26,960 bases of DNA, taken from positions 1 through 26,960 of the forward strand of contig NIVC01002169.1 of NCBI GenBank assembly GCA_002269645.1, given 5' to 3'. Under the pieces are notes generated by a model. It worked only from the letters and a program-made list of their open reading frames with translations. It was not told the origin of the DNA and did no database searches. Every line of letters starts with the position of its first letter. Within the stretch, counting starts at the first letter, position 1. A program made the position numbers and the translations under genes. This document shows positions 5,462 through 25,428 of the stretch, one piece after another. The stretch comes from Macrostomum lignano. Taxonomy: Eukaryota.

Positions 5462-5574
5462 CTATTTTCCAGCAGCGTCTCCATCGGGAGGCAGCAGTTT
5501 CTCAACTCCGCCATCAAACTTGCCAACATAAACGGCGCTCGCTTTGCCAATAAACAGGCCGGTCTCGACTAGAC
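5462..5574 (-). CDS. RPIA: RPIA coding exon 6 (GLVETGLFIGK...AAGK stop)
   Basis: Acceptor TGCCAG, VETGLF motif, TAG at 5464-5462. Confidence 0.93.
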
Positions 5575-8500
5575 CTGGCAAATTTAGATAATTAGGAAAA
5601 ACGGTATGGAAAAACTGTTACTACTACTTAGGCTCGATACTCGTAGTAGCTCACCAGGCATCATGTGCAGTTCCCGATCAACCTGTTCCCATTTCTGTTG
5701 AGCATCGAACTGCCAGTCTATTAGGAAATTGCCATTGTCTGTCACTACCGGACCCTGTTGGTGAAAGTGTAAGAGGTGCAAGGCAGATGACGGTTCAGAA
5801 TAATCAAATTCGTCTTTTGAGTTGCATCTCCTTTTTCAGAGGCCTGGCATTGCCCTTCTGCGAAGGCATTGCTCTGGGCTGCATGAGAGACATAAATACA
5901 TTTTAGTACCTTTATTCTAGCCTCACATTCTACTTGCTTAGAGTTTTTGACCAAATTATGTACTTGTTTGAATCAAGTGATCTAGAAGCTCAACTATTAA
6001 AATATATGAATAACTGAATCTATGGGTAAGGATAATGTAATTTGTGTCATGCAGAAGTGTCTTACAATAATTTGTATTTTCCTACATATTATAGTGCAAA
6101 AGAGCTTCACTTTTGTAGCATATCTACCGTTTGCTATGTTAGATGCCTGCTCCAATATGATAATGCATTTTATCACAATATTAAATATTGAATTGCAGCT
6201 TTAGCCAAGGAAGCGCCGGATATACGCCGCCCCCCCCCCCAGGCCAGAGAACCTTCATCGTGTTCTGCACCTCGGCAGGGGTGGTGAAGCCAACGACACC
6301 CCAGGACACAAATGCCGCAAACCAAGAGTTCCTGTTTCCACAACTTAACAGCAACGGCCTTCGCAGCCGCATTACGTAACTAATCTCCCGGCTAGACACC
6401 GCGCGCCCTGCGTTCGTCTTTCTTCAAGAGACCAAACTCAGAACATCCGAGGACTTCCACCCACTGCCGGGCTTGTCATCGCCGCCCCGTTGTGACGGAG
6501 TGCCATACGATTCCAATCCGCAGGGCGCAGACCCGGCCAACCGGCATCCTATCCAGCCGCCGTTCACCGAGCAGCCCGTCACACCGCGCGGCCCCGACTG
6601 CTGGCGCGCTGTCTGACCTGGAACGAATCGGACAGGGACACCTGGTGCAGCGGCTGCAGATCCCGTCGCACCGCCTGCACCAATCGTCACCCACCCAGCG
6701 AGACAGAACCAGTGACAGCCGCAAACGCCACCCCCGCGCCCGCCCCTCTACTTGAGCAAGGCCTAGGACCTACCTGCATGCGACGCACCCCCAACAACCG
6801 CGACTACTGCTGCAGCGGCTGCCTTGGCCACCGCAAATGCAGTAGGCGAGGCAGCTTACAGAAAACGAGCGTGGCGGCTAGCCAGCCTGGAAACCAACAT
6901 ATATAAGTGACATCTGCAAGTGTAATAAATATAAACTTTTCACGATTGTTTCCATCTACTATTTTCAGTGGTTTGGAAATGTTTCATTTTGTTGTACATC
7001 TTTTCGTATAATCGTATTTCTGTATGTTCTCCAAATTATCTAGTGGCGCAATCGAACCTATTGAAAGAAAATGTGCATTACATTATCTCAATATTTAATC
7101 AACATTACTTTAATTATTTTAATAATACTTGGCTTTAGTTATAACTTGAAAAGATGCTATTTGCACTTCTGTGTCCCGTCCTTGCACAATCTCGAAATTC
7201 TTCCTACTTTTCTTATTTTCTACTCATTTTGAGAGGCACAAAAAGCGTTGACACCCTGTAATATACATGTTGATGCTAGGACCCTGAATTCAAGATACAC
7301 CGACATTTAAATATGTAGCTAATACAATTTGTAAAAAATGTAAAAAATGAAGCTATACATTTAAATAGCTACAGAGAGGACGCCAGCTACAGATGGGGCG
7401 CCAGCTACAGATGGGCGCCAGCTACAGATGGGCGCCAGCTACAGATGGACGCCAGCTACAGATGGGCGCCAGCTACAGATGGGGCGCCAGCTACAGATGG
7501 GGCGCCAGCTACAGATGGGCGCCAGCTACAGATGGGCGCCAGCTACAGATGGACGCCAGCTACAGGGAGGACGCCAGCTACAGATGGGGCGCCAGCTACA
7601 GATGGGCGCCAGCTACAGATGGGCGCCAGCTACAGATGGGGCGCCAGCTACAGATGGGCGCCAGCTACAGATGGGGCGCCAGCTACAGATGGGCGCCAGC
7701 TACAGATGGGGCGCCAGCTACAGATGGGGCGCCAGCTACAGATGGGCGCCAGCTACAGATGGGCGCCAGCTACAGATGGACGCCAGCTACAGGGAGGACG
7801 CCAGCTACAGATGGGGCGCCAGCTACAGATGGGCGCCAGCTACAGATGGGCGCCAGCTACAGATGGGCGCCAGCTACAGATGGACGCCAGCTACAGGGAG
7901 GACGCCAGCTACAGATGGGGCGCCAGCTACAGATGGGCGCCAGCTACAGATGGACGCCAGCTACAGGGAGGACGCCAGCTACAGATGGGGCGCCAGCTAC
8001 AGATGGGCGCCAGCTACAGATGGGCGCCAGCTACAGATGGGCGCCAGCTACAAATGGGGCGCCAGCTACAGAATTGGCGCCGCTAAAAACTCCTGCTCTT
8101 TCCTAAATCACCGCGTCAGCGCTAACCATTTTGCCAGCGGACTCTCGCAGCACAGCTCGTCCGCCAAATCGCGTCTCAATTTGCCGCTTAACCAGAGCCC
8201 AGGCCATCGGCACAACTTCTATTGGGACGCCGGCGCGCCAGCGTTCGCCAAATTGCCTACTAATTTTAGCTTCATCGCAGACAATTACTAACGAATTCGC
8301 GGCGGTGTCGACGATTTTTTCTTGCAATAGGCAGCCGCCGCCGCCTTTAATTAAGGCCAAATTGGCGTCGACTTCGTCGGCTCCATCGACGGCCCAGTCT
8401 AGAGGTGCGGTGCAGTATTCCAGCTCAGCCAGCGGCATGCCGTGCTCTCTGATTAGCTGCTTTGCCTGCGCAGGGCCAAGAGGGTGGATAAGACACAATG

Positions 8501-9316
8501 AATGCGCGCGTACGAGTACTAGAAGTATGCAGATCCTGCATTCTATAATTTACTCTGATTAAGTACACGAACACGTTACACGTTAAAAGTACCGCCTTAG
8601 CACTTTAAGTGTTGAGGTACACGAGCACTTGGATTAGTTAAGTACACGCGCACTCTAAGCAGTAAATTACACGCGCACTTCAAATATTTAAGTAACACGA
8701 GCACTTGGACTATTTAATCGTAAGTACACACGCACTCTAGGAGTTTAAGTACACGCGCACTTTGAGTGTTTGGGCATACGAGTACTTTAAGTGCTTAAGT
8801 ACACGCGCACTCAAACCTTAAAGTACAACTCAACACTACACTCAATCACAATTAGGACAGAGGAATGAAGAAGTCGTTAATGAATTTGATTTTTATTCAC
8901 AGACCTGATAAGAAGTTGGCACGCATTTAACTGACCAGCTTTTCTGCTTCAAAAGCTCAGCTAAAATAATAGAAGAAAATGAACATTATTAACTTTGAAG
9001 AAATATGCTAAAAATGCGACTTAATATTTGAGCACTTACCAATGCGCTCAACAACAAACACCATGGTTCTACCAGATCCAATACCAATAGTTTGGCAGTT
9101 CTGAAATTATATAGAACACATTGATCAAATTCAACTGAAATGAATCACTTTCCAAACCTGAACTTTGATAACTCATAGCAATAAAACACATTCAGACATA
9201 AAAAAGCAACCAACCTGTAGATTCTCATCCACAGCCATGTTGGCAGCAAGCCGCCTGGCACTGTCTTTCCTGCTAGCAAGTTCACCATTTGTATAACTGC
9301 TATTTGTTGTAGTCAT
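5462..9316 (-). CDS. RPIA: Ribose-5-phosphate isomerase A, 6 coding exons, 256 aa
   Basis: Exons 9316-9215, 9100-9040, 8960-8905, 8465-8127, 5754-5655, 5574-5462; all introns GT-AG with matching phases (0,1,0,0,1); total 771 nt. Motifs GIGSG(R)T, CVPTSYQA, AVDGADEVD, LIKGGGGCLLQEK, GVPIEV, GPVVTDNGNF, PGLVETGLF. An acceptor at 9391-9392 suggests a further upstream exon or leader. Confidence 0.95.
5655..5754 (-). CDS. RPIA: RPIA coding exon 5 (GPVVTDNGNF...LHMMP)
   Basis: GPVVTDNGNFLIDW motif; acceptor CAACAG, donor GTGAGC. Confidence 0.95.
6190..6900 (+). mobile_element. Decayed non-LTR retrotransposon fragment (APE endonuclease N-terminus) in RPIA intron 4
   Basis: GC-rich island; reading 6329-6440 gives FLFPQLNSNGLRSRIT*LISRLDTARPAFVF then, after a 1-nt frameshift, LQETKL, matching the QxNxNGL...LQETK pattern of LINE endonucleases. 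Boundaries approximate. Confidence 0.6.
7367..8084. repeat. Minisatellite, 17/18-bp unit (GGGCGCCAGCTACAGAT[G]), about 40 copies, in RPIA intron 4
   Basis: Direct tandem copies with recurring ACAGGGAGGACGCC variant; ORFs 7393-8291 are repeat translations. Confidence 0.96.
8127..8465 (-). CDS. RPIA: RPIA coding exon 4 (AKQLIREHG...ESAGKM)
   Basis: DGADEVD and IKGGGGCLLQEK catalytic motifs; acceptor GCGCAG, donor GTTAGC. Confidence 0.96.
8561..8830. repeat. Degenerate 25-bp-period array with conserved core AAGTACACGCGCACT in RPIA intron 3
   Basis: Core copies start at 8615, 8640, 8665, 8690, 8722, 8747, 8797 with weaker copies at 8561, ~8772, ~8821. Confidence 0.8.
8905..8960 (-). CDS. RPIA: RPIA coding exon 3 (AELLKQKSWSVKCVPTSYQ)
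   Basis: Acceptor TTTTAG, donor GTCTGT, conserved CVPTS motif, phase fits both neighbours. Confidence 0.92.
9040..9100 (-). CDS. RPIA: RPIA coding exon 2 (NCQTIGIGSGRTMVFVVERI)
   Basis: Acceptor TTTCAG, donor GTAAGT, GIGSG motif; too short for the ORF track. Confidence 0.92.
9215..9316 (-). CDS. RPIA: RPIA coding exon 1 (MTTTNSS...AANMAVDENLQ)
   Basis: ATG at 9316, RpiA-like ARRLAANMAVDE helix, donor CAG|GTTGGT at 9214; start codon choice is inferred. Confidence 0.8.
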
Positions 9317-9910
9317 TTTGAATTGGCCAGTAGTGAAAGCCACAGATATTTGGACTTTAGACTTTGATAAAAATGGTGCTACTGTACCACCTGAAAAAGC
9401 AATCAAGTAACTTAACAAAGTAGCTAAGAAAGTCACTTCTAGGCAAAAATATAAATTATAATAGCTAAAAGTCATAATTTTTTAAAAACTTACTAATCAC
9501 TTTCTTAAACATCTTATATCCTAAAGCCTGAAAAAAGAAAGCAAAACTAATTATTTGATAAATTAAAAAATTGGAAACTTAGACTAAAAATTTAGAAAAT
9601 TAGGCAAGGAAGTAGCTTTTCTGATTAGAACAAACAAGAATCTATATAAACAGTATCCTATCCTATAAAGATAAGATCAATTGGTACACCTATATAACTT
9701 GCTTATATATGCTAGAGATCATAGAAAGATAAATATAGAGGGGGCAAAAAGGCCATGACTATCCTCTTAGCTATGGCCAAAATTTGGGCCATACTTTTTT
9801 GTCTATGTCTATGTAACTATGCATCTTTTCTAATATATAAATTTTGGCCTTGGGTTGTAGTTGTAGTTGCTTAGTATTGTAGCTTGCCTATCTCTCCTAC
9901 ACAATTTTGC

Positions 9911-10024
9911 GGCAATCTTCAAGTTTCGTTCGTTTAATTAATTCCGGAATTATTTCACCCTCTATTCAAGGGTGGTGGGGGGTGGGTGGGTGTTGGAATT
10001 AAACGAACGAAACTTGAAGATAAC
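9911..10024. mobile_element. MITE-like element: 25-bp perfect inverted repeats flanked by a 9-bp direct repeat
   Basis: ATCTTCAAGTTTCGTTCGTTTAATT (9915-9939) and its exact reverse complement (9997-10021); CAATTTTGC at 9902-9910 and 10025-10033. Confidence 0.7.
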
Positions 10025-10874
10025 CAATTTTGCTACCAAGGGGTCACTCTCTAAGGTACATAGGCCACATGAAAGAGTCACCCAGTGTGTGCCAGGGCTC
10101 AGGAGATGTTGCAATAAGGGACCTTTTTTCCAATTGCTATAATAAAATATCATTTTGGCACTCTACATTGCTTTGCCAGTGGTGACATTGTTACATATAT
10201 AGATAGACCATGCCAAATAACTTTGCCAACTTATTTTTAATGTACTGGATTAAGAATAATTTAACTTGAGTTAAAAACTAATTTTATCTTTACTACTAAG
10301 TTTTAGAAATTTCAGTACAAATAGATCTAGGGCAGGCCTAACTAGTCTTGAATGAGAATGACTAAGTCATGAGGTCATTTCAACCAGTTAGGATTGTCTA
10401 TATTTAAATAACAAAATAACACAAGTTAATTTTAACATTGTAAATCGGTGTTAAAAAGCTAGCCATGATTGTTAACATTGAGATTTGATAGGAGTTTTAG
10501 GTCGTAAAATACTTCAAATAAGAAACCTGGAAATTTATGCTTGTCACGTTTTAGAATCGCTGTTTGGTAAAACAAAAGCCGAATAGCCTGGATAGGACTG
10601 GTGAGGTAGTTTGGCGGGAAACGTTTTTGAATAAAAATTTTGAAAAAAAATGTTTTTTCAGAAATCTATCGCATACCCACAAACAACTCATTTTTAGTAT
10701 ACTCAGCAACATTGAAAAGTCGCCACTGTATGTGCGTGAGCAGCTAGTTTCTCTCGGACTCTGAAATAGAGGCTCTTCATGGCAATCGATTCTAGAACCA
10801 GAATCGGTTCGGATTTCCAAGAAAAAAAGCAGTATAACTTTTTAACTTTGTTGAATGTTTGACTGCCTTAACAG

Positions 10875-10882
10875 CCTCACTT
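10875..10882 (+). repeat. Target site duplication, left copy (CCTCACTT)
   Basis: Identical 8-mer directly abuts both TIR ends; does not extend to 9 bp. Confidence 0.93.
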
Positions 10883-11129
10883 ACTCCCGTAAATCTAGCC
10901 GCATGCCATCCTCATAAAAAATTTAAATGCTTGCGACAGCTATAAATCTGGATATTTTGCAAAGATTTAGACACTTTATTTATGCAACAGAAGGTTCAAA
11001 GCATTCCATGTACTTGGCTTGTCTGTGGGGAGGCGTTAAAAATTAGTTACGTGCGGATAGCGTGCGGATGGCTTGTTTTTTGGGCTTAGGAATTTTAAGC
11101 TTTGGGCAATTCTTGCGACAGTTGCTGAT
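10883..11129 (+). repeat. Left terminal inverted repeat (247 bp)
   Basis: Begins ACTCCCGTAAATCTAGCCGCATGCC; reverse complement of 25174-25420 with one mismatch seen (10930). Confidence 0.97.
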
Positions 11130-11817
11130 TCTTATAGTCCATCAAGTCCTGTAACCAAGGACAAATTCTCACAACTGGAAGTTCAATGGTTCGGTCAGCA
11201 GAGGACTTTAAAACTTAAAAAAATGTCGAATTTTTTATTTCGCTTGCGACACTCGACTTTTTCAGAGCTGTACATTGCGACAGCTGGCTTTTTCAATTGC
11301 CAGATGTCCAAAGAGTATAATTGAGAAACTGGCACATTTGCGACAGCTTCTTTTGCAAGGATATAAAGTTTTTTGTTTGAACCATAGAAGTCTCCCGGTG
11401 TTACAATTTTTTGTTTTTATTTATAACAACATAGCTATAATTTAATAAAGAAACAGAAAGTACTTTAATGTTTTTATCTTTAGCTCAGTTAAAAATTTGT
11501 TTTATAAAACTAATAAATCAAGTAGTTATATATTATTGCTCTTATTAAAGGATAATTGAAGAAGTGCTAAAATTTAACTTGCAATTGAATGATAACGTAA
11601 CTTTAGAATTACTGCACGTGCTTTCATTTGAGCTATGGGCTGTGACATTAACAGTAGGCTAATTGGCCACTTAGTTATTGACTGTACAATATCGAGTAAC
11701 AAACATTGCTTGATACGTGTTTCTAGGTCTAGCTAGCAGTATTATGATTCATATTTTGTGTTACACTCAATCCACTTTGTAACACATTAACACACGACAC
11801 AATTAAGATAATAATCT

Positions 11818-11862
11818 TTAGTCTAGTCTAGTCTAGTCTAGTATAAGCCTCTTTAGTCTAGT
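11818..11862. repeat. Short (AGTCT)n microsatellite
   Basis: TAGTCTAGTCTAGTCTAGTCTAGT plus one further copy. Confidence 0.7.
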
Positions 11863-12466
11863 GTACACTTTAAAGAGAATATTCAGATTGACTTTTGGAT
11901 TTTTGAAAGTTAAAAGTGATTCACTTTGTAGCTACTCATTTAGTATCGTGGCATGGTACCAAAGACTCCAAAATTTTATAGAGTGCTAAAATATTCTGCC
12001 TTAGTAATATGCTAGCAATATTTTCCTAATCAGCTGCAGACAAGTCACAAAAGATGGCATACAAAGATATTATATAATTGTTTGTTTTTTCTAAATTCAT
12101 ATTGGTTGAATACACTTAGCTCGTAGCTATTCAAAGTAAATAAAATTATCTAGATTGTGTGCTGTGCTCTCTATTATTTTTTCGAATTATTCCAGTCCTA
12201 CATAGATCTAATTTCGTTTTGATGACTTACCAAAAAAGTTTATACTTTTTAAAAACAGATTTATTATTCTCATTATAATTTAGAAATATAGAACTATAAT
12301 AATTGGCAATTGCAGTATTCAGCTCAGTCTGTTATATACAATTTCTCATTAATTGTATATTTATGCGAAACATGGAAACATTTGAAATAATTTAATATTA
12401 TTTGAAAATTAAAAAAATTCAATGAGCCCTCGATAAAACACAACTAACAAAGGGATATTTTTTCCA

Positions 12467-15400
12467 ACTGTGTTTGTGTGCTTATCAAGCTTGTGTCGAT
12501 CTGGAAACAGTTTGCATGCCAAAGCGCAGTAGCACACTCGACTGTGTTTGTGTGCTTATCAAGCTTGTGTCGATCTGGAAACAGTTTGCATGCCAAAGCG
12601 CAGTAGCACACTCGACTGTGTTTGTGTGCTTATCAAGCTTGTGTCGATCTGGAAACAGTTTGCATGCCAAAGCGCAGTAGCACACTCGACTGTGTTTGTG
12701 TGCTTATCAAGCTTGTGTCGATCTGGAAACAGTTTGCATGCCAAAGCGCAGTAGCACACTCGACTGTGTTTGTGTGCTTATCAAGCTTGTGTCGATCTGG
12801 AAACAGTTTGCATGCCAAAGCGCAGTAGCACACTCGACTGTGTTTGTGTGCTTATCAAGCTTGTGTCGATCTGGAAACAGTTTGCATGCCAAAGCGCAGT
12901 AGCACACTCGACTGTGTTTGTGTGCTTATCAAGCTTGTGTCGATCTGGAAACAGTTTGCATGCCAAAGCGCAGTAGCACACTCGACTGTGTTTGTGTGCT
13001 TATCAAGCTTGTGTCGATCTGGAAACAGTTTGCATGCCAAAGCGCAGTAGCACACTCGACTGTGTTTGTGTGCTTATCAAGCTTGTGTCGATCTGGAAAC
13101 AGTTTGCATGCCAAAGCGCAGTAGCACACTCGACTGTGTTTGTGTGCTTATCAAGCTTGTGTCGATCTGGAAACAGTTTGCATGCCAAAGCGCAGTAGCA
13201 CACTCGACTGTGTTTGTGTGCTTATCAAGCTTGTGTCGATCTGGAAACAGTTTGCATGCCAAAGCGCAGTAGCACACTCGACTGTGTTTGTGTGCTTATC
13301 AAGCTTGTGTCGATCTGGAAACAGTTTGCATGCCAAAGCGCAGTAGCACACTCGACTGTGTTTGTGTGCTTATCAAGCTTGTGTCGATCTGGAAACAGTT
13401 TGCATGCCAAAGCGCAGTAGCACACTCGACTGTGTTTGTGTGCTTATCAAGCTTGTGTCGATCTGGAAACAGTTTGCATGCCAAAGCGCAGTAGCACACT
13501 CGACTGTGTTTGTGTGCTTATCAAGCTTGTGTCGATCTGGAAACAGTTTGCATGCCAAAGCGCAGTAGCACACTCGACTGTGTTTGTGTGCTTATCAAGC
13601 TTGTGTCGATCTGGAAACAGTTTGCATGCCAAAGCGCAGTAGCACACTCGACTGTGTTTGTGTGCTTATCAAGCTTGTGTCGATCTGGAAACAGTTTGCA
13701 TGCCAAAGCGCAGTAGCACACTCGACTGTGTTTGTGTGCTTATCAAGCTTGTGTCGATCTGGAAACAGTTTGCATGCCAAAGCGCAGTAGCACACTCGAC
13801 TGTGTTTGTGTGCTTATCAAGCTTGTGTCGATCTGGAAACAGTTTGCATGCCAAAGCGCAGTAGCACACTCGACTGTGTTTGTGTGCTTATCAAGCTTGT
13901 GTCGATCTGGAAACAGTTTGCATGCCAAAGCGCAGTAGCACACTCGACTGTGTTTGTGTGCTTATCAAGCTTGTGTCGATCTGGAAACAGTTTGCATGCC
14001 AAAGCGCAGTAGCACACTCGACTGTGTTTGTGTGCTTATCAAGCTTGTGTCGATCTGGAAACAGTTTGCATGCCAAAGCGCAGTAGCACACTCGACTGTG
14101 TTTGTGTGCTTATCAAGCTTGTGTCGATCTGGAAACAGTTTGCATGCCAAAGCGCAGTAGCACACTCGACTGTGTTTGTGTGCTTATCAAGCTTGTGTCG
14201 ATCTGGAAACAGTTTGCATGCCAAAGCGCAGTAGCACACTCGACTGTGTTTGTGTGCTTATCAAGCTTGTGTCGATCTGGAAACAGTTTGCATGCCAAAG
14301 CGCAGTAGCACACTCGACTGTGTTTGTGTGCTTATCAAGCTTGTGTCGATCTGGAAACAGTTTGCATGCCAAAGCGCAGTAGCACACTCGACTGTGTTTG
14401 TGTGCTTATCAAGCTTGTGTCGATCTGGAAACAGTTTGCATGCCAAAGCGCAGTAGCACACTCGACTGTGTTTGTGTGCTTATCAAGCTTGTGTCGATCT
14501 GGAAACAGTTTGCATGCCAAAGCGCAGTAGCACACTCGACTGTGTTTGTGTGCTTATCAAGCTTGTGTCGATCTGGAAACAGTTTGCATGCCAAAGCGCA
14601 GTAGCACACTCGACTGTGTTTGTGTGCTTATCAAGCTTGTGTCGATCTGGAAACAGTTTGCATGCCAAAGCGCAGTAGCACACTCGACTGTGTTTGTGTG
14701 CTTATCAAGCTTGTGTCGATCTGGAAACAGTTTGCATGCCAAAGCGCAGTAGCACACTCGACTGTGTTTGTGTGCTTATCAAGCTTGTGTCGATCTGGAA
14801 ACAGTTTGCATGCCAAAGCGCAGTAGCACACTCGACTGTGTTTGTGTGCTTATCAAGCTTGTGTCGATCTGGAAACAGTTTGCATGCCAAAGCGCAGTAG
14901 CACACTCGACTGTGTTTGTGTGCTTATCAAGCTTGTGTCGATTGGAAACAGTTTGCATGCCAAAGCGCAGTAGCACACTCGACTGTGTTTGTGTGCTTAT
15001 CAAGCTTGTGTCGATCTGGAAACAGTTTGCATGCCAAAGCGCAGTAGCACACTCGACTGTGTTTGTGTGCTTATCAAGCTTGTGTCGATTGGAAACAGTT
15101 TGCATGCCAAAGCGCAGTAGCACACTCGACTGTGTTTGTGTGCTTATCAAGCTTGTGTCGATCTGGAAACAGTTTGCATGCCAAAGCGCAGTAGCACACT
15201 CGACTGTGTTTGTGTGCTTATCAAGCTTGTGTCGATCTGGAAACAGTTTGCATGCCAAAGCGCAGTAGCACACTCGACTGTGTTTGTGTGCTTATCAAGC
15301 TTGTGTCGATCTGGAAACAGTTTGCATGCCAAAGCGCAGTAGCACACTCGACTGTGTTTGTGTGCTTATCAAGCTTGTGTCGATTGGAAACAGTTTGCAT

Positions 15401-18400
15401 GCCAAAGCGCAGTAGCACACTCGACTGTGTTTGTGTGCTTATCAAGCTTGTGTCGATCTGGAAACAGTTTGCATGCCAAAGCGCAGTAGCACACTCGACT
15501 GTGTTTGTGTGCTTATCAAGCTTGTGTCGATTGGAAACAGTTTGCATGCCAAAGCGCAGTAGCACACTCGACTGTGTTTGTGTGCTTATCAAGCTTGTGT
15601 CGATCTGGAAACAGTTTGCATGCCAAAGCGCAGTAGCACACTCGACTGTGTTTGTGTGCTTATCAAGCTTGTGTCGATCTGGAAACAGTTTGCATGCCAA
15701 AGCGCAGTAGCACACTCGACTGTGTTTGTGTGCTTATCAAGCTTGTGTCGATCTGGAAACAGTTTGCATGCCAAAGCGCAGTAGCACACTCGACTGTGTT
15801 TGTGTGCTTATCAAGCTTGTGTCGATTTGGAAACAGTTTGCATGCCAAAGCGCAGTAGCACACTCGACTGTGTTTGTGTGCTTATCAAGCTTGTGTCGAT
15901 CTGGAAACAGTTTGCATGCCAAAGCGCAGTAGCACACTCGACTGTGTTTGTGTGCTTATCAAGCTTGTGTCGATTGGAAACAGTTTGCATGCCAAAGCGC
16001 AGTAGCACACTCGACTGTGTTTGTGTGCTTATCAAGCTTGTGTCGATCTGGAAACAGTTTGCATGCCAAAGCGCAGTAGCACACTCGACTGTGTTTGTGT
16101 GCTTATCAAGCTTGTGTCGATCTGGAAACAGTTTGCATGCCAAAGCGCAGTAGCACACTCGACTGTGTTTGTGTGCTTATCAAGCTTGTGTCGATCTGGA
16201 AACAGTTTGCATGCCAAAGCGCAGTAGCACACTCGACTGTGTTTGTGTGCTTATCAAGCTTGTGTCGATCTGGAAACAGTTTGCATGCCAAAGCGCAGTA
16301 GCACACTCGACTGTGTTTGTGTGCTTATCAAGCTTGTGTCGATCTGGAAACAGTTTGCATGCCAAAGCGCAGTAGCACACTCGACTGTGTTTGTGTGCTT
16401 ATCAAGCTTGTGTCGATCTGGAAACAGTTTGCATGCCAAAGCGCAGTAGCACACTCGACTGTGTTTGTGTGCTTATCAAGCTTGTGTCGATCTGGAAACA
16501 GTTTGCATGCCAAAGCGCAGTAGCACACTCGACTGTGTTTGTGTGCTTATCAAGCTTGTGTCGATCTGGAAACAGTTTGCATGCCAAAGCGCAGTAGCAC
16601 ACTCGACTGTGTTTGTGTGCTTATCAAGCTTGTGTCGATCTGGAAACAGTTTGCATGCCAAAGCGCAGTAGCACACTCGACTGTGTTTGTGTGCTTATCA
16701 AGCTTGTGTCGATCTGGAAACAGTTTGCATGCCAAAGCGCAGTAGCACACTCGACTGTGTTTGTGTGCTTATCAAGCTTGTGTCGATCTGGAAACAGTTT
16801 GCATGCCAAAGCGCAGTAGCACACTCGACTGTGTTTGTGTGCTTATCAAGCTTGTGTCGATCTGGAAACAGTTTGCATGCCAAAGCGCAGTAGCACACTC
16901 GACTGTGTTTGTGTGCTTATCAAGCTTGTGTCGATCTGGAAACAGTTTGCATGCCAAAGCGCAGTAGCACACTCGACTGTGTTTGTGTGCTTATCAAGCT
17001 TGTGTCGATCTGGAAACAGTTTGCATGCCAAAGCGCAGTAGCACACTCGACTGTGTTTGTGTGCTTATCAAGCTTGTGTCGATCTGGAAACAGTTTGCAT
17101 GCCAAAGCGCAGTAGCACACTCGACTGTGTTTGTGTGCTTATCAAGCTTGTGTCGATCTGGAAACAGTTTGCATGCCAAAGCGCAGTAGCACACTCGACT
17201 GTGTTTGCGTGCTTATCAAGCTTGTGTCGATCTGGAAACAGTTTGCATGCCAAAGCGCAGTAGCACACTCGACTGTGTTTGTGTGCTTATCAAGCTTGTG
17301 TCGATCTGGAAACAGTTTGCATGCCAAAGCGCAGTAGCACACTCGACTGTGTTTGTGTGCTTATCAAGCTTGTGTCGATCTGGAAACAGTTTGCATGCCA
17401 AAGCGCAGTAGCACACTCGACTGTGTTTGTGTGCTTATCAAGCTTGTGTCGATCTGGAAACAGTTTGCATGCCAAAGCGCAGTAGCACACTCGACTGTGT
17501 TTGTGTGCTTATCAAGCTTGTGTCGATCTGGAAACAGTTTGCATGCCAAAGCGCAGTAGCACACTCGACTGTGTTTGTGTGCTTATCAAGCTTGTGTCGA
17601 TCTGGAAACAGTTTGCATGCCAAAGCGCAGTAGCACACTCGACTGTGTTTGTGTGCTTATCAAGCTTGTGTCGATCTGGAAACAGTTTGCATGCTAAAGC
17701 GCAGTAGCACACTCGACTGTGTTTGTGTGCTTATCAAGCTTGTGTCGATCTGGAAACAGTTTGCATGCCAAAGCGCAGTAGCACACTCGACTGTGTTTGT
17801 GTGCTTATCAAGCTTGTGTCGATCTGGAAACAGTTTGCATGCCAAAGCGCAGTAGCACACTCGACTGTGTTTGTGTGCTTATCAAGCTTGTGTCGATCTG
17901 GAAACAGTTTGCATGCCAAAGCGCAGTAGCACACTCGACTGTGTTTGTGTGCTTATCAAGCTTGTGTCGATCTGGAAACAGTTTGCATGCCAAAGCGCAG
18001 TAGCACACTCGACTGTGTTTGTGTGCTTATCAAGCTTGTGTCGATCTGGAAACAGTTTGCATGCCAAAGCGCAGTAGCACACTCGACTGTGTTTGTGTGC
18101 TTATCAAGCTTGTGTCGATCTGGAAACAGTTTGCATGCCAAAGCGCAGTAGCACACTCGACTGTGTTTGTGTGCTTATCAAGCTTGTGTCGATCTGGAAA
18201 CAGTTTGCATGCCAAAGCGCAGTAGCACACTCGACTGTGTTTGTGTGCTTATCAAGCTTGTGTCGATCTGGAAACAGTTTGCATGCCAAAGCGCAGTAGC
18301 ACACTCGACTGTGTTTGTGTGCTTATCAAGCTTGTGTCGATCTGGAAACAGTTTGCATGCCAAAGCGCAGTAGCACACTCGACTGTGTTTGTGTGCTTAT

Positions 18401-18461
18401 CAAGCTTGTGTCGATCTGGAAACAGTTTGCATGCCAAAGCGCAGTAGCACACTCGACTGTG
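12467..18461. repeat. Tandem array of a 74-bp unit, 81 copies, inside the transposon
   Basis: Unit ACTGTGTTTGTGTGCTTATCAAGCTTGTGTCGATCTGGAAACAGTTTGCATGCCAAAGCGCAGTAGCACACTCG; 8 variant units noted; degenerate partial copy to ~18482. No spacers, so not CRISPR. The many 66/68-aa ORFs are artefacts. Confidence 0.98.
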
Positions 18462-18651
18462 CTTATGTGCTTTATCAATCTTAATATGAACCTTCTCAGA
18501 GCAGGCTTCTTTTTAGTGTGTTTTTATCTAAACTTCATTCTTTATACTGGTATTACAATTGGTTATTGTCAATTCTATTCCATGTAATTGGTTATTGTCA
18601 TCACAAATCAGACAGCTTATTACTTTAAAAATTGTGGCCTTTTCTTTTCAG

Positions 18652-19488
18652 GCCTTTATCAAGTATCCGTTCGTTGTTTTTGAGGGCAACGGCCCTTTGC
18701 CTGACAATGCTCCCGAGCTCGATTTGGTTGTCGGCGTGTTGGTCGATGTTTCAGATGTTCGTGAAGCAGCAAAAGTATTGAATCTTGAATTGCAAAAGGC
18801 GCCGATTCGGTGTGTTCGAGGGATGGACGTGAAGTATCTTTCTGAAGATGGAATTGCCCTGGCACTTTTTAACGGCGTTGCCGTTTTCCGAAAGCGGCTG
18901 GTGGAAGGAGAGAACAGGTTAGATAAAACAAAACGCTTACAGGCGGTTGAGGCTGGTCGTGTTTGGTTATTAGAGCAAAATTGGAAAATTTCACCTGGCA
19001 ATTTTTCAGCGGATTATCTCGCCAAGGAGCACATTGAAAAGGCCTTAAAGCATTTTGAGCTTGCGGCTTCTATGGCTTCACCTGAAATGGTGCGCAGCGT
19101 AACGTTTGGAATCATTTGTGCTCGACAAGCCTTGCATGATTTTGAAGCATGTCTTAAGGGCATTACTCCGAAAGTTGTTGATCAATGCTACGAGGAAAAT
19201 GGTTCCTTGTATGCCAGTGCTGCAAATAGCGACGTGCAGGATAAGGAAAAGAGGCGCAAGGAGGAGGAGGAGGAAGCAAAGCGCAAGGAGGAGGAAGCAA
19301 AGCGCAAGGAGGAGGAAGCGAAGCGCAAGGAGGAGGCGGGGGCGAAGCGTAGAGTTGCAGGAAAGCAAAGCATGGAGCAAGCAAAGAATTCAAAGGCTAG
19401 TTCCAGCACGAAGCGTACTCGTAAATGTATGAATATAGTCAGCAAAGGCAGCACAACCCGGTCAAGTAAAAGGATACGACAAGATTGA
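18652..19488 (+). CDS. Transposon-borne second gene, unknown protein (exon of 278 codons; upstream exon not located)
   Basis: Long open frame 18559-19488; strong acceptor TTTTCTTTTCAG at 18640-18651, phase 0; globular-looking N-part, (EEEAKRK)n charged helix, basic C-tail. No family recognised. Confidence 0.65.
   Translation, partial: AFIKYPFVVFEGNGPLPDNAPELDLVVGVLVDVSDVREAAKVLNLELQKAPIRCVRGMDVKYLSEDGIALALFNGVAVFRKRLVEGENRLDKTKRLQAVEAGRVWLLEQNWKISPGNFSADYLAKEHIEKALKHFELAASMASPEMVRSVTFGIICARQALHDFEACLKGITPKVVDQCYEENGSLYASAANSDVQDKEKRRKEEEEEAKRKEEEAKRKEEEAKRKEEAGAKRRVAGKQSMEQAKNSKASSSTKRTRKCMNIVSKGSTTRSSKRIRQD
19251..19340 (+). repeat. 21-bp coding repeat (GAGGAGGAAGCAAAGCGCAAG) giving EEEAKRK
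   Basis: Three to four in-frame copies; explains the overlapping shadow ORFs at 19078-19454. Confidence 0.85.
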
Positions 19489-20719
19489 TCAATTTAATCT
19501 CCGGTGAGTTGCAAATATGCTTTAATTTTCAGGTATTGTAAACTGCAGTTTTTCTTTTAATGTTAACCGATTAGCTGTTAACTATGTAGTACAATAGGTT
19601 ACGAAAAACTGTTTCCCTCTCATGGATGAAGAAATATAATGGATTGCCAATCGGACCCAGTTACTTTTGGTTCTTCGTCGCTTTGTTTCCACTCCCCACA
19701 GTGCCTTTTCATTGTCTGAGAGCGGCTGGTCTTCGATTTTCTATCCTTGATTTTGGAATCATTGGAAAGCTAAATCTGAGTCCATTTCTCTAGTGCAAAG
19801 TCACGTGATGATGTATGGACGCATTGCCTCAGTCCATGAAAAAGCACGGAGGAGCGGAGGCAAAGCGGCTAAAAGCGAGAAAAGAACTGAGTTCGATTAC
19901 AAATCCAGTCTATTCCATCATCGATGTTCCAGCTAAGTAAATACAGTTTGTCGACGACAGTCGGCAAAACATCACAAATGACAAACCCAATTTGATCATT
20001 CTTCATTTACCAAGTCCTGATTGCTACGAGTGATACGGCTCGTATGAAAACTTTATTTACGAGATTTTGATGTACATCATTGCTAGAACATGTGTTTGTA
20101 TAAGATTTACTAAAATCACGCCATCACAAAACCATTCCAGTGCGACGATACGATGCGATGAGAAGTGTTACAAAAAAGCTACGATTCATCAGTTTTTTCT
20201 GGAATTAAAAACAATTGCAGCCATAACAAAAACAAACCTTTGAAGTTTTGATTTGGGATTTGTGAAAGCCTCAGCGTTTGTTTGATAGTGCTATGAAAAA
20301 CTATGGTTATTAATGCTTGAGTAATCGACTATCAAATTAAATTTTCATTCTTCCTAAAATTAAATATTCTTCTTAAGTTTTTTACCCCGCTTTTCATTTT
20401 TAATTAGCAATTTATAATAATATACATGATATTCTGCACATCTTGGTCTGTAGTCAATACAAAAAATGTGCGTCTATGGAAAGGAAAAGAGATACAAGTC
20501 CAATAACAATTCCTTCAAAAAATAACGATAATAGTAAGATTATAAGCACCTACCTACTGTTGTTAGTCTTTGTATTTCTTTAACTTTATTTTCCGTGATT
20601 CTTTAAACAAACTTTCACTTAAAAATCATAGTTCCGTGCTTCGTCAGACGTACGAATTGAAAAATTATTTACAAGGAACTCATAGGAGTAACTTTCGAAA
20701 ACATGTATTGGCAAACTCT

Positions 20720-20990
20720 GACCTCTGTCTCTGCCTCTCTCTACGTCCCTCGGATCCTTTAAAACTTTTATCTTCTCTTCTGTTTCCTATTTTCTCTCTC
20801 TCTCATCTCATCTCTTCTTTTATATCTTCTCTCTCCCCTGTTCTCTCGTCGATCTTCCCTCACCACCTCTCTTCTCTCTCGTCTCTACTCTCTCATATCT
20901 CCTTTTTTCCTCTTTCATCTCTCCCATCTCATCTGTTTTCTCCTCTCTCTCCTTCTCCCCTCTCTTCTCACTTCTCCTCTTCTCTCACAG
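20720..20990. repeat. CT-rich polypyrimidine low-complexity tract
   Basis: Irregular (CT)/(CTT) run between the two convergent genes; ORF 20570-21010 is its Ser/Leu/Pro shadow. Confidence 0.85.
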
Positions 20991-21093
20991 TAAAAATATG
21001 TATGAACTAACGGAGTTTTTTGACGAGGATCTGCCATTGAGTTTTTTCGTAAGTGATCATACATGCACAATGTTTTTCAACGAAACCGATCGT

Positions 21094-24000
21094 CTAATTG
21101 TTATTTGTTCTCGTAGCTCCGCACCCGCAAAATCCAAGAGTGTAAATCAAAAGACTTGGTCTTCCCCGGCTCCTTTGGCGATTTTCCTTAGAAAAGTGAA
21201 GCTGTCCTAGTTCGCTTGATGCAGCATCATCATAAATGTAACTAGAATCGCCTCGATTGAGACGCCCGAAGAAATGTCCTGTCACGGCTGTCGTACAGCA
21301 GAGATTGTAGCTGAAAAAAATTGGCAGGTACAATGAGTGTAGGGCACACAAAACATGTTGAAAGAAGTACATGCATGTACTTCAAGATATGTTTCAATAG
21401 TAAGCCCCTTCAAATGTTCATAGGAGTACATCAGAGTTTGGTGGTGCGCACGATGAACACTTACACTACACAGTACTACTAATACTGGATAAAAACTTCA
21501 ACAGTCCAAAGTCATCACACTTTCAAGAGCCAAAAATTCCTTACTGAATATTTCGCTCCTCTGGAAATGGATGCACGACGTCGTGTGGTGGAAGAATCTC
21601 CCGTCCGTTAGCTGCATCGGGGATGCCGATCACCAAAACCGGTGGCGGGAAATTGACAAACCGAGGGTGGTGTACGTAAAGCGACGCATAATCGCAAGTA
21701 CTGCATTCGACACATCTGTCACCCGAGGTAAAAAATTGCAGGAGAAAGTCCTCTGGAGACATAAAAGTCACATGGCTACTAAATGACGATAGACGTTCCG
21801 GCACGGGAAGAACGAGTTGATAAAAACGCCTCTCCTCGTTAGACGAGCAGTAAGGGCAAACAAAGCGTTGAGCGATTGCGACGATGTCTCCAAGCACCCA
21901 AGTACAGACATCCAGTGCTCCTTGGTACAGATTGATATCAATCTCTTTGGAAGTACTGGATCTACGCCTTGTGATGGCCCCATGTCGATGTAGTTCTAGA
22001 CATCGCAATAGCAGCCTAGCTCGAGCGAAATGGGCGCTTTCTTGAGTAAATTATTGTACAGCTGCATGCAAAAAGTCCACCAACGGAGAAAAATTATCCG
22101 GAAGTTGCTGAACTGCTTGGCGAAAATGCTGATCATCTCTCATTGCGAATGTGAGGGCCGTCAATAAGTGATCCACAGTGCATGCGTTGTACACATGAAC
22201 TGTAAGTACTTCATCATTAAATGGAACCTTTCGAGAAGTTGAATAATTTTTCATTAGAGAAAAGTTACTTGATACCCGTAGAGATGGAGCACATACCGAA
22301 GCTCGTGCATTTAAGGTGGGACATGTTGAATAACGAACTTTCCGCCTTTTGTTAGTGACGACAGAAAAATGAGAACGGTCATCTGTTATATTCTCTTCCT
22401 CCTCCATGGGAGTGAATGGACTTTCAGGTTTTCGCTGTACAGGCGGCCTTGAACTGTCGTAAGGCGGTCTTGACCTGTCAGGCGGCCGTGAACTGCCGCT
22501 GCCAGGCGGCCGTGAACTACCGCTGCCAGGCGGCCGTGAACTGGCGCTAACAGGCGGCCCTAAACTGCTGCTGCCCGGCGGCCCTGAAACGTCACTGACT
22601 GGCGGCCTTGAATTGCCGCTGCCAGGCGGCCGTGAACTGGCGCTAACAGGCGGCCGTGAACTGTCGTCAGGCGGCCCTGAACTGCCGCTGCCCGGCGGCC
22701 CTGAAGCGTCACTGACTGGCGGCCTTGAATTGCCGCTGCCAGGCGGCCGTGAACTTCCGCTAACAGGCGGCATTGAACTGTCGGCTGGAGGCATTGAACT
22801 GTCGTCAGGCGGCACTGAACTGTCGGCTGGAGGCATTGAACTGTCGTCAGGCGGCACTGAACTGTCGGCTGGAGGCATTGAACTGTCGTCAGGCGGCATT
22901 GAACTGCCGACAGGCGGCATTGTACTGCCGGCAGGCGGCACTGAACTGCCGGCAGGCGGCATTGTACTGTCGTCAGGCGGCCCTGAACTGCCGCTGCCCG
23001 GCGGCCCTGAAACGCCACTGACTGGCGGCCTTGAACTGCCGCTGCCAGGCGGCCGTGAACTGTCGTCAGATGGCCCCGAACTGTCATTTATCTCCGAACT
23101 GCCTTCTGATTCATCAAGACATTGATAATCTCGCTGTTGCATAAAAACTCCGAGAGGACGCAGAAATTGATTGTAGGTTCCAGGAAGAACACTGTGCAGT
23201 TTCCTGATGAAAACGTGTGTGCTTAAGCAATGCCCCTCGAGTAGATGGTTTGTTACTATTCCGACACAGCGCTCTGTTCCTCCTTCTTGAAAGCAATGTG
23301 TCGAGCGATCGACAACGGAAAAACTCTCCTCGCGAGCATATCTGCACGGCTCTGACATGATGCTCGTAAAAAGTGGCAAATACGGCAACATAACGTCGAA
23401 AAGCTTGCGTGACAATTCAGGGCAGTAAAATGGATTGGGCATAGAGCGAAAGTTTTCTACTGCGGAAGCAGAAAATTTATTCTCCAGGTCCTGATGCACT
23501 TCCTGGAACATCTGCCAAAACGGTGATGACCTTTTGATTGTTTCGTCTGGCTTTGCGTACAGCCATTCCTCTCGAGGAATAAATTCTCCGCTTTCATTCA
23601 GCTCGCCGGCGATGGTAGCATCCAAATACACTTTTGGAGATACTGCTTCACCTTCAATCCGTAGTTCTTCTATTAGAGCACTCATTTCCTCCAATGTCGG
23701 TGCAAGAAGAACAGCAAAAAAGGCTGTAACAATGTTCTTAGTCTCGCTGAGACTGGTTGAATGCACTAGAGAACGAAATGCGTCTTTCCAAAAGAGCGAA
23801 ATTCGATTGTCGCGACAAGCCTTAACAACGGACCAGCTGCAAAACTCGTGAACGATATGGCTTCTACCAAGTCCGACGAGTGGAAATTTACGCAGCTCCC
23901 GTACTGAAAATGAACGACGAAGAATGGAACAGCATAGTCTCAGAAATGGGAGAATGTCCATTCCATGAAGACCGTAGATAAGAGCAGACAGACTTGGAAT

Positions 24001-25098
24001 GTTGAAGTCTGTGACTGCCTGCCGAACTACGAGGCCTGTGACAGATTTCCTTACCGAAGTTAGGAACGTGTCGACAGCAAATTTCAGCGTTGATTTCGTC
24101 TGCGAGGATGTGACTACAAGAAGAATCGGTACTGGCGCTTCTCCATTAACAGGGTGTCGCAGAGCTAGTATGTGGAGATAAGCTCCATGACCATCCACAA
24201 GAGGAGCTCCTGTAGAGTCCAGACCAATTTCAATCGGCAAACTGCGGCGGTGTAGTATTTTGAGCAGAGTGATTGCCTGGTCGAAATACAGAACGGCAAA
24301 GCGCACATGGCCAAGTCCTGGCTCAACATTAATATGTCTCACAAAGGGGGGATCTAACTGTTCTCCTTGTACGATTATGTCCAAAATAGGATCGCAAAAC
24401 AGCTTTTCTCTAAGTCGTTCTTGAGATGCTGCGGTCCTCAGAACGCTCGAAGACGGAACTTCAGGAGTTAGTCCCCCGGCAGCTAGTCTTGCTGAAACTA
24501 GATAGGCATTACTATCATCTACTCTTTTAGCCAAGTCTTTTCGCCGTTCACCTCTGAGAGGGCGTGGTTCTATAACATGCGGTACAATTGGTTGAAGTGG
24601 TTTCAGAATCCAAACAAGCCGATTCTCTTTTGACTTTAGTTTGAACGAAGTCTTGCATGTTACAACACGGCAGTATAAATCTGCAGAAACCTCGCCAGTA
24701 CTTATTGTAATTCTACTTCGCTGCATGCATAAACAACAAGACAACATCGAGGAAAAGTTAGGCAGGACTTTATCCTGCCAGTTAGGGCACAACTGACCAT
24801 TGTCGCCCAGCAAATCTGATTGCACTTTTACGGTGAAAATAGGCACATTTTCTCTACAATTGGATGTACAAGGCGTCGCCCTAAAACTCAACATTCGAGT
24901 AATTGCTATGAAAGAAAATGCACACATAAAACAGTACAAAATAGTAAGAGCTTACTCTTCAGGATCTTCATCTTCATCCGCTTCACACTCCTGATTGTCA
25001 GGGCCGACAGTGTGCAACTGAAATGCGTTTCTTCGAAACTGGTCGTATAGCCAACGTCTGTTAGAAAAAGTGTCCTCAAAACCAAGCAAACGGCACAT
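21094..25098 (-). CDS. MULE/NOF-like DDE transposase fused to USP(C19)-like cysteine protease domain; 3 exons, one internal in-frame TAA
   Basis: Exons 25098-24956, 24880-21545, 21310-21094 (3696 nt, 1232 codons); introns GTAAGC..TTTTAG and GTAAGG..TTTCAG, both phase 2. Putative D (LDSTG, 24219), D (VTDF, 24009), xxxH (GRSH, 23859), YLPLFT, E (GGTER, 23274). Protease motifs NAC (22182), two CxxC, PPPVLVI, GHF (21276), YDD (21231). TAA at 22053-22051. Confidence 0.8.
22440..23085 (-). repeat. In-frame 24-bp-based repeats encoding Pro/Gly/Ser/Asp linker (SSRPPGSG, SSMPPADS)
   Basis: All unit lengths preserve frame within the transposase ORF; shadow ORFs at 22560-23125. Confidence 0.88.
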
Positions 25099-25173
25099 TC
25101 TGGACCAAACAGTTTCAGCTGTTCTCGGGCCGGGTAGGGGCCCCTCAAGTTCTGATCGCAAAATGCTACCCTG

Positions 25174-25420
25174 ATCAGCAACTGTCGCAAGAATTGCCCA
25201 AAGCTTAAAATTCCTAAGCCCAAAAAACAAGCCATCCGCACGCTATCCGCACGTAACTAATTTTTAACGCCTCCCCACAGACAAGCCAAGTACATGGAAT
25301 GCTTTGAACCTTCTGTTGCATAAATAAAGTGTCTAAATCTTTGCAAAATATCCAGATTTATAGCTGTCGCAAACATTTAAATTTTTTATGAGGATGGCAT
25401 GCGGCTAGATTTACGGGAGT
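25174..25420 (-). repeat. Right terminal inverted repeat (247 bp)
   Basis: Ends GGCATGCGGCTAGATTTACGGGAGT, immediately followed by the TSD. Confidence 0.97.
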
Positions 25421-25428
25421 CCTCACTT
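25421..25428 (+). repeat. Target site duplication, right copy (CCTCACTT)
   Basis: Identical to 10875-10882. Confidence 0.93.

Follow-up and report, generated by a model that had tools for sequence, protein, structure and literature searches.

A probable Rehavkus-type transposon in Macrostomum lignano

We analyzed a 26,960-nt stretch of the genome of the flatworm Macrostomum lignano (GenBank assembly GCA_002269645.1, contig NIVC01002169.1, positions 1 to 26,960 of the forward strand; hereafter the window) and found that positions 10883–25420 very probably represent a single inserted cut-and-paste DNA transposon of Rehavkus type, 14.5 kb long. The element was assigned to the Rehavkus clade because its transposase matched published Rehavkus DDE domains in a profile search, in profile–profile comparison by hhalign and in a joint alignment. 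It belongs to a known kind, Rehavkus, of which it is a divergent variant in a flatworm host, with a second gene and a USP-fold-like domain. An earlier note made from the sequence alone had described the region as a young and unusually complete Mutator/NOF-like transposon, in which a spliced transposase–protease gene on the minus strand, a convergent gene on the plus strand and a 6-kb tandem array all lie between terminal inverted repeats (TIRs) of 247 bp with one mismatch, flanked by a perfect 8-bp target site duplication (TSD). The TIRs and the TSD were confirmed by base-by-base comparison, the arrangement of both genes and the array between the TIRs was also confirmed, and the proposed fusion of a DDE transposase to a cysteine-protease-like domain was supported by the analyses below. 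Feature coordinates are listed in Table 1.

Affinity of the transposase with Rehavkus

Relatives of the transposase were retrieved by an exhaustive HMMER search with its repeat-free N-terminal 605 residues as the query. This search captured 94 relatives, of which the M. lignano protein PAA87906 was the best (40% identity, E 1e-111) and others came from mussel, loach, sea cucumber and many other assemblies. A word-indexed protein search with the full transposase open reading frame (ORF) returned no relatives, the serine/proline-rich (S/P-rich) repeat being suspected of swamping the index, and PDB sequence searches with the ORF and with the family profile yielded nothing significant. In the family alignment, D241, D311 and H361 were invariant and E556 was ~90% conserved, within the motifs DATG, DFSWA, LCxSHxxK and TNxxVExWFxxVK; the window copy has GRSH where the family has CxSH. 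The family therein displays a DDE triad with the (C/D)xxH motif after the second D and the E..N/F...K block of Mutator-like elements (MULEs), and the predicted DDE residues of the window transposase were shown to be intact and conserved.

We then compared the family with a Rehavkus profile hidden Markov model (HMM) made from six published DDE domains in the supplementary alignment of PMC6446971. The model matched the window transposase with E 1.8e-15 and 63 bits (Z = 1e6, conservative) and 94 of the 101 proteins searched, which comprised the window protein and all 100 retrieved proteins, with E-values down to 3e-70, while single Rehavkus sequences matched family relatives with E-values down to 2e-59. 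By hhalign, the family and Rehavkus were aligned over 292 columns with a probability of 100 and E 6.9e-53, and the joint alignment was in register at the D, D, H, SPF, NPYFCP, PLW and E blocks.

The AlphaFold2 model of the window core had a mean predicted local distance difference test score (pLDDT) of 87 and a predicted template-modeling score (pTM) of 0.80, with an N-terminal four-stranded unit at residues 70–114 bearing a C-x4-C...H pattern. A Foldseek search with this model returned WRKY domains (6j4e, 7z0r and 2ayd; probability 1.0, TM-score 0.64–0.69, E only 0.12–0.27) and RNase-H-like folds, including the IS256-family ISCth4 transposase, with no strong match over the whole chain. An N-terminal zinc finger of WRKY-GCM1-like fold is therefore modestly supported by these models.

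That the element is instead a canonical MuDR-clade or FB-NOF-type Mutator element, with convergent genes homologous in kind to mudrA and mudrB, appeared quite improbable. The convergent two-gene layout with long TIRs, a TSD of 8 bp inside the MULE range, a predicted N-terminal WRKY-like finger of the kind typical of MULE transposases (PMC1702500) and matches to the Pfam MULE domain (PF10551) in four relatives would all be in line with such an element, but the Pfam matches were only sub-threshold among the 95 family members (best E 2e-3, 18.9 bits against a cut-off of 27.6). Moreover, five canonical MuDR-clade DDE domains from the PMC6446971 supplement gave a probability of 0.1 and E 0.6 by hhalign and 0 targets by hmmsearch, whereas Rehavkus gave E 7e-53 in the same test, and relatives of the second gene were found only in two M. 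lignano families. The Mutator/NOF-like classification in the earlier note thus stood insofar as Rehavkus is conventionally grouped with MULEs, but the affinity is with Rehavkus and not with MuDR.

Several observations weigh against a Rehavkus-type element or against its link to Mutator. The window TSD is 8 bp long versus 9 bp in Rehavkus, and the PHD finger of Rehavkus was found neither in the window transposase nor in its M. lignano homologue PAA68264 (P0096). Pfam searches of the window proteins gave no matches, the sole entry being a spurious Erv26 at E 0.14, and no MULE match reached the Pfam threshold. Rehavkus itself was equally undetectable with the five canonical MuDR domains, which make up small profiles. 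The label 'Mutator superfamily' accordingly rests on convention, with the placement of Rehavkus among MULEs attributed to Yuan and Wessler in PMC6446971, on the sub-threshold MULE matches in 4 of the 95 relatives and on the WRKY-type finger, and the element is 'Mutator-like' only in the broad conventional sense that lumps Rehavkus with MULEs.

None of the 95 family members contained KDZ, hAT, P or CACTA domains of Pfam. This result bears on two further superfamilies. A Zisupton (KDZ) element would combine an 8-bp TSD, which Zisupton makes (PMC12730594), with a C-terminal cysteine protease; however, genuine Zisuptons match PF18758 (PMC9297572), as did 0 of the 95 members even at E 0.05, and the family has a strong Rehavkus match and a sister family with 9-bp TSDs. 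Zisupton was effectively refuted by the absence of PF18758 together with the Rehavkus match, and we give it next to no weight. We rate a hAT or P-type element just as low: the 8-bp TSD and the ~245 aa between the second D and the E, where both superfamilies have a large insertion, would fit, but hAT, BED, THAP and Tnp_P matches were absent from the 95 relatives, the first-D block reads DxTG and not D.W as in hAT, neither Hermes nor P transposase was among the top 50 fold matches, where ISCth4 was present, and the protein matches Rehavkus.

Element ends and a sister family

The two 247-nt TIR arms, which form the sole long inverted repeat of the window, were complementary at 246 of 247 positions, with a single mismatch at position 48 (C at 10930 versus T opposite 25373), and their complementarity broke off sharply at position 248. 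The two copies of CCTCACTT were identical at 8 of 8 positions and both lay directly at the TIR tips; no 9-bp reading of the window TSD fits. The combination of TIRs, TSD and array is beyond chance. Within the element ends we also found a short motif, TTGCGACAG, for which all 7 window matches were located in the ends versus 0.5 expected by chance, with a mirrored orientation (plus strand at the left end, minus strand at the right end). Its repeats are candidate transposase-binding sites. An Rfam scan of the window gave no matches.

Three full copies of a sister family (11.2–13.6 kb) were found at other loci of the same assembly, including L001, which encodes P0096. Their terminal sequence ACTGACATGTCCGTAGCCGC is similar to ACTCCCGTAAATCTAGCCGC of the window element, and the left TIR tip of the window has ACT...CCGTA..AGCCGC in common with the sister-family tip ACTGACATGTCCGTAGCCGCC. 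The sister copies have TIRs of more than 2 kb with 89-bp arrays at the inner ends of both, in unit numbers of 5 to 15 that differ at every end, and they encode a transposase and a convergent downstream gene as in the window. Their 9-bp TSDs (CAATCTTCA, CCTAGTCAG and CTCGAACGC) were perfect in all three copies, from which the lineage appears to have been recently active in the M. lignano genome.

An assembly artefact of a satellite-rich region could in principle produce an inverted repeat with its flanks, the window being rich in tandem repeats and M. lignano assemblies being described as difficult in PMC10468722, but such an origin is extremely improbable: the TSD lies exactly at both tips, the same architecture was found at three independent sister loci each with its own TSD, and the interior of the element is coherent and coding.

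Among more distant relatives, a metagenome contig of the European Nucleotide Archive (L004) carries a PHD-bearing family member between inverted arms of ~200-bp tandem repeats (6736–7430 and 16517–17455), the right arm ending at the contig end.

A one-sided tandem array

The minisatellite of the window element is confined to one side, where it separates the genes from the TIR located 3' of the transposase and does not form part of that 247-bp TIR. A census of its units showed that ~75 of 81 were identical, with a few differing by 1-bp deletions, and this homogeneity is a product of array turnover. By its position and by comparison with the sister family, the 74-bp array was shown to be a Rehavkus structural feature. 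Since the 74-bp unit of the window and the 89-bp unit of the sister family are unrelated in sequence, the conserved trait is the presence and position of an array and not its sequence. The array is upstream of the second gene, from which it is separated by 170 bp in the window and by 214 bp in L001, and the only motifs that the array unit has in common with the TIR or with subterminal sequence were 9–11-mers at chance level. The earlier note had named an 'own satellite' and long TIRs among the traits of the element, but these belong to the layout already described for Rehavkus and make no new combination: Rehavkus elements have long TIRs with subterminal tandem repeats or a minisatellite ahead of the 3' one, encode a PHD finger and make TSDs of 9 bp (PMC6446971; bioRxiv 10.1101/2024.12.02.626372).

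Other repetitive tracts were found within the element. A coding minisatellite (22440–23085) makes up the linker that connects the transposase core to the protease-like domain; its units of ~21–24 bp encode S/P-rich heptad-like repeats, while the linker of L001 (12070–12329) has 63-bp units in 4–5 copies that vary among sister-family copies. A CT-rich low-complexity tract (20720–20990) is located in the spacer between the 3' ends of both genes, and similar tracts flank L001 (53–1073).

Transposase gene structure and a premature stop

The minus strand contains an open frame of 962 codons (22054–24939), which continues beyond two in-frame stops, one on either side. The upstream stop is held by the first of two GT..AG introns, both of which are frame-preserving, and tblastn with P0096 gave collinear alignments over 25170–23092 and 22434–21607. 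After splicing of the first intron, the spacing from RRWLYD to W.D is 62 aa in the window versus 59 aa in P0096. The conceptual full-length transposase is predicted to have ~1255 aa.

The stop at the downstream side, TAA at 22051–22053, is a premature stop and not part of an intron, because P0096 aligns ungapped across this site and has ordinary residues there. A tiny intron around it was ruled out by the same ungapped alignment, the only GT..AG pair defining an intron of 19 nt. This TAA is the only internal stop in the conceptual coding sequence (CDS), in which no frameshifts and no other defect were seen, and it cuts off 241 residues, so that the Cys box of the protease-like domain is kept while the zinc ribbon and the His box are lost. 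Its presence makes the coding capacity incomplete and shows that the window copy, or its source, had already been hit by mutation; the description of the element as 'unusually complete' was overstated, given that the nonsense codon shortens the protease domain.

The age of the insertion was likewise claimed too firmly. When a cut-and-paste element inserts, neither TIR serves as a template for the other, and the 246/247 identity of the two arms consequently provides no insertion date, so that 'young' does not follow from it. The perfect 8-bp TSD alone speaks for recency, weakly and with little resolving power. Whether the window copy is fully autonomous and currently active, the TAA being tolerated, read through or a sequencing error, was considered against this background. 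Its DDE core is intact without a frameshift, the truncated product would keep the DNA-binding and catalytic domains, the TSD is perfect, the TIRs are near-identical and the perfect TSDs of the three sister copies point to recent activity of the lineage, but the stop lies within a family-conserved domain, implying that the domain matters, and the near-identity of the TIRs does not date the insertion. We therefore regard a fully autonomous and active window copy as unlikely, though well short of dismissible.

A protease-like C-terminal domain

An iterative HMM search seeded with the conceptual C-terminus of the window protein showed that at least 17 of the 100 retrieved proteins have this domain. 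In the alignment, the domain elements follow the order of USP proteases, namely a Cys box (NTC[TC]xDN or N[AT]C in the family, NACTVD in the window), a CxxC...CxxC ribbon and a His box (GH[YF]...W.YDG, with YD[DG], in the family and GHFF...YIYDD in the window), where the Cys and the CxxC are invariant. In the window copy this catalytic domain is interrupted by the TAA between the Cys box and the His box. The domain of relatives matched Pfam UCH at E 2.6e-9 and C98 at E 1.3e-4. A structure model was made for the domain of an M. lignano paralogue, with the window fragments in the alignment, and 50 of the top 50 Foldseek matches of this model were USP catalytic domains (E 2e-3 to 0.1), with the best TM-scores for the SUMO isopeptidase USPL1.

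Some results run counter to this assignment. The window domain itself had no Pfam match, a word-indexed protein search with the domain alignment found no matches, and the PDB profile search returned USP12, USP21 and USP5 at a non-significant E of 0.6–2. The paralogue model is of low confidence, with a pLDDT of 57 and Foldseek E-values only in the range given above. With moderate confidence, we interpret the C-terminal domain as a cysteine-protease-like domain of USP fold (clan CA, C19/C98-like). The protease fusion proposed in the earlier note is accordingly retained as cysteine-protease-like, with a predicted USP fold in place of the Ulp1 type usual for MULE fusions.

Across the 95 family members, Pfam detected Peptidase_C48/Ulp1 in 7 (best E 9e-22), UCH/USP in 6 (best E 2.6e-9), one USPL1-like C98, one DUSP and PHD fingers in 8. 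USP- or USPL1-like domains were distributed over the branch of flatworms, mollusks, fishes and echinoderms and over the Drosophila/aphid-like branch. In relatives nearest to Rehavkus-1_TC and -3_TC (P0061, P0047 and P0084), the protease is of the Ulp1/C48 type, whether or not a PHD finger accompanies it, while the flatworm branch and the relatives nearest to Rehavkus-1_DY/AP have a USP- or USPL1-like protease (P0071, P0008 and P0019). Within the Rehavkus-like family, the protease has apparently been swapped between unrelated folds. The literature searched contained no mention of a transposase that bears a USP-fold domain, nor of a Rehavkus protease; Repbase annotations, which were outside the search, may record them.

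A second gene and its start codon

The second gene (gene 2) is convergent with the transposase gene and encodes a conserved N-terminal domain of ~165 aa, followed by a K/E-rich repeat (KEEEAKR) and a basic tail. It shares 41% identity over 164 aa (E 2e-35) with the convergent gene of L001, a divergence between the families that is about equal to that of the two transposases, so that the gene has co-evolved with the transposon. Searches of Pfam and PDB found no relatives of gene 2, and no homologues were located beside more distant family members (L002–L005), so that in the protein search and these neighborhoods its relatives were detected only in the two M. lignano families. Within M. lignano, the transposase is accompanied by a second conserved gene.

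The segment MASPEM..KCMNI of gene 2 is 100% identical to the M. lignano UniRef entry A0A1I8IEQ5, whose last six residues and stop are encoded at 20141–20161 after a ttccag acceptor; through this match, a spliced isoform of gene 2 is already in the existing gene set. The entry, named 'Protein MNN4-like', is a gene 2 fragment (19072–19437 plus 20141–20161) and probably owes its name only to the K/E-rich repeat.

Gene 2 has no in-frame ATG before its first internal Met codon, ~60 codons in. In both families it starts without an ATG at a conserved TTTCAG|GCyTTyATy acceptor (18640–18652 in the window, 15955–15965 in L001). The homology of the window transposase also starts at an in-frame acceptor (gatcag|GGT, 25171|25170, within 25168–25176), which lies 3 nt inward of the TIR edge and precedes the first ATG by 24 codons, while the L001 transposase has an ATG of its own. 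The spliced leader of M. lignano ends in ATG (...TTGCATG) and ~30% of genes are trans-spliced (PMC8629364). The element genes may borrow the AUG of the host spliced leader, and start codons donated in this way would explain why the genes begin at acceptors without an ATG.

The distribution of protease folds raises the further possibility that Rehavkus-lineage transposases generally need a protease that deconjugates ubiquitin-like proteins, for which unrelated folds may have been interchanged. We hold the two ideas jointly, a need for such a protease with a swap of its fold in Rehavkus and leader-borrowed AUG codons for the M. lignano element genes, as a tentative reading with the balance tilted against it. 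If the need for a protease were true, it would point to required deSUMOylation or deubiquitination, whether for escape from SUMO-dependent silencing or for control of the transposase.

Table 1. Positions of the element features in the window and of the full sister-family copies at their own loci
Feature	Position	Strand	Remarks
TSD, left copy	10875–10882	.	CCTCACTT; adjoins TIR tip
Left TIR (3' TIR relative to transposase)	10883–11129	+	tip reads ACTCCCGTAAATCTAGCCGC
Subterminal motif TTGCGACA(G/C), 5 direct copies	10931, 11113, 11244, 11275, 11338 (10931–11346)	+	
AT-rich non-coding spacer, left TIR to array	11130–12466	.	34–37% GC, without long ORFs
Minisatellite, 74-bp unit, 81.4 copies	12467–18482	.	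Tandem Repeats Finder (TRF), 99% matches; before 3' TIR
Gene 2	18652–19488	+	convergent with transposase; CDS directly after acceptor ttttcttttcag
Alternative 3' exon of gene 2 (CDDTMR, stop)	20141–20161	+	joined from 19437; exact C-terminus of annotated P0107
Transposase exon 3 including stop codon	21094–21310	-	USP-like His box YNLCCTTAVTGHFFGRL..YIYDD; His codon 21274–21276
Intron 2, GTAAGG...TTTTTTCAG, 234 nt	21311–21544	-	flanking exons collinear with P0096
Transposase exon 2	21545–24880	-	zinc finger, DDE core, S/P-rich linker and first part of USP-like domain (predicted)
Premature in-frame TAA	22051–22053	-	codon 1015 of 1255, inside protease-like domain
USP-like domain	start 22227 downwards	-	Cys-box Cys codon 22180–22182
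S/P-rich repeat linker	22440–23085	-	TRF
DDE core	~23215–24267	-	codons D 24217–24219, D 24007–24009, H 23857–23859, E 23272–23274
WRKY-like zinc finger (predicted)	~24565–24738	-	
Intron 1, GTAAGC...TTTTAG, 75 nt	24881–24955	-	holds upstream in-frame stop
Transposase exon 1	24956–25170	-	protein homology from 25170 (tblastn high-scoring segment pair); first in-frame ATG 25096–25098
Right TIR (5' TIR relative to transposase)	25174–25420	-	inverted-repeat comparison
TTGCGACAG motifs at right end	25182, 25364	-	
TSD, right copy	25421–25428	.	CCTCACTT; adjoins TIR tip
Sister-family copy L001 (P0096 locus)	7164–18343		M. lignano GCA_002269645.1, full copy
Sister-family copy L006	4760–18403		M. lignano GCA_002269645.1, full copy
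Sister-family copy L007	6021–17321		M. lignano GCA_002269645.1, full copy

Proposed transposition mechanism

In the mechanism we propose, the transposase would use its predicted N-terminal zinc finger to recognize the TIRs and the subterminal TTGCGACAG repeats, and would excise the element and reinsert it by cut-and-paste with a stagger of 8–9 bp, by which CCTCACTT would have been duplicated. The right TIR would supply the transposase promoter, being the sole element sequence upstream of the transposase gene. Gene 2 would encode a conserved accessory protein whose novel N-terminal domain is followed by a charged repeat resembling a coiled coil and then by a basic tail, and by analogy with maize it could act as a MURB-like helper. 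The protease, again by analogy, might be a deconjugating enzyme that acts on the transposase or on SUMO/ubiquitin-dependent silencing. The 74-bp minisatellite is the subterminal tandem repeat of Rehavkus, expanded one-sidedly to 81 copies, and may provide extra transposase-binding sites or a promoter or enhancer for gene 2; binding-site and promoter roles of arrays have been proposed for foldback MULEs in work cited in bioRxiv 10.1101/2024.12.02.626372. The window copy itself would have been mobilized in trans, or could still be active if the protease is dispensable.

Genomic surroundings

A host gene for ribose-5-phosphate isomerase A lies on the minus strand at 5462–9300, where the exon at 8106–8480 matches PF06026 (E 7e-36) and further exons were recognized by eye from GIGSGRT (9011–9106), VPTSYQ (8896–8985), GPVVTDNGNF (5584–5781) and PGLVETGLF (5462–5581). 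The left end of the transposon is ~1.5 kb upstream of the 5' end of this gene, which fits the habit of MULEs to land near gene starts. Four unrelated arrays are located outside the element, at 1–732 (28 bp, 26 copies), 1776–5228 (26 bp, 138 copies, 3.4 kb), 7367–8085 (17 bp, 41 copies) and 8599–8811 (~25 bp). The 17-bp satellite is inside an isomerase intron, and long 'ORFs' at 7393–8291 are artefacts of its repeat.

Significance

Rehavkus is among the least characterized groups of eukaryotic DNA transposons, known mostly through Repbase records of insects and a single annelid and used mainly as an outgroup. The present results widen the host range of the clade to flatworms and, by protein homology, to mollusks, fishes and echinoderms, and they associate Rehavkus-like transposases repeatedly with a C-terminal cysteine protease of Ulp1 or predicted USP fold. 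The window element also presents a transposon-borne minisatellite that has grown to satellite size (6 kb, 81 near-identical units), which bears on the seeding and spread of satellites as argued for Tribolium Rehavkus. As M. lignano is a model for transgenesis and regeneration, an endogenous and apparently recently active cut-and-paste family with defined ends would be practically useful, and the annotation of gene 2, now labeled 'MNN4-like', needs to be corrected. No major concept is altered by these findings; a known category is refined.

Comparison with known systems

We compared the element with the Rehavkus references Rehavkus-1_TC, -3_TC, -1_HR, -2_NVi and -1_DY and Rehavkus1_AP (Repbase; PMC6446971; bioRxiv 10.1101/2024.12.02.626372). 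Both have a homologous DDE core, long TIRs and a minisatellite of variable repeat number before the 3' TIR. The TIR length of 247 bp is within the range of 26–412 bp in the published table, as is the element size of 14.5 kb within the published 5–18 kb, and, among the retrieved proteins, those closely related to the canonical elements likewise end in a cysteine protease, some with and some lacking a PHD finger. In addition to the TSD length and the PHD finger discussed above, the window element differs from Rehavkus in the predicted USP fold of its protease, as opposed to Ulp1/C48 in the relatives nearest Rehavkus-1_TC and -3_TC, in a second conserved convergent gene where the published tables list one ORF, in its flatworm host versus the published insects and one annelid, and in its array, which with 81 units over 6 kb is much larger and confined to one side.

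Maize MuDR resembles the window element in its long TIRs (~200 bp), in two convergent genes that each begin next to an end, in a DDE transposase with an N-terminal zinc-finger DNA-binding domain, predicted in the window protein, and in a TSD within the 8–11-bp range. No sequence relationship of the DDE domains was detectable, however, and MuDR has neither a protease nor a minisatellite, while gene 2 is likened to MURB by layout only, with its detected relatives solely in the two M. lignano families.

Foldback MULEs (FB/FB-NOF, Tetris, nematode Tm1 and mosquito Muta1) combine long inverted termini with tandem repeats that lie within or beside them, as does the window element. L001 and the metagenomic L004 are truly foldback-like in that their arrays are inside both TIRs, whereas the window array is one-sided and does not form part of the 247-bp TIR; FB, NOF and Tm1 were compared by description only.

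Zisupton (KDZ) shares with the window element an 8-bp TSD, a multi-exon transposase fused to a cysteine protease of the ubiquitin-like protein (UBL) type and an occurrence in animals, but it is set apart by the lack of a PF18758 match in any relative, by Ulp1 versus the predicted USP protease fold and by the Rehavkus DDE core of the window element. As in plant KI-MULEs and other fusions, a MULE-type transposon is here linked to a papain-like cysteine protease of the kind that deconjugates ubiquitin or SUMO, where the known fusions involve Ulp1 in MULEs and an OTU protease in Medicago MULEs (PMC1702500), in contrast to the window domain with its predicted USP fold.

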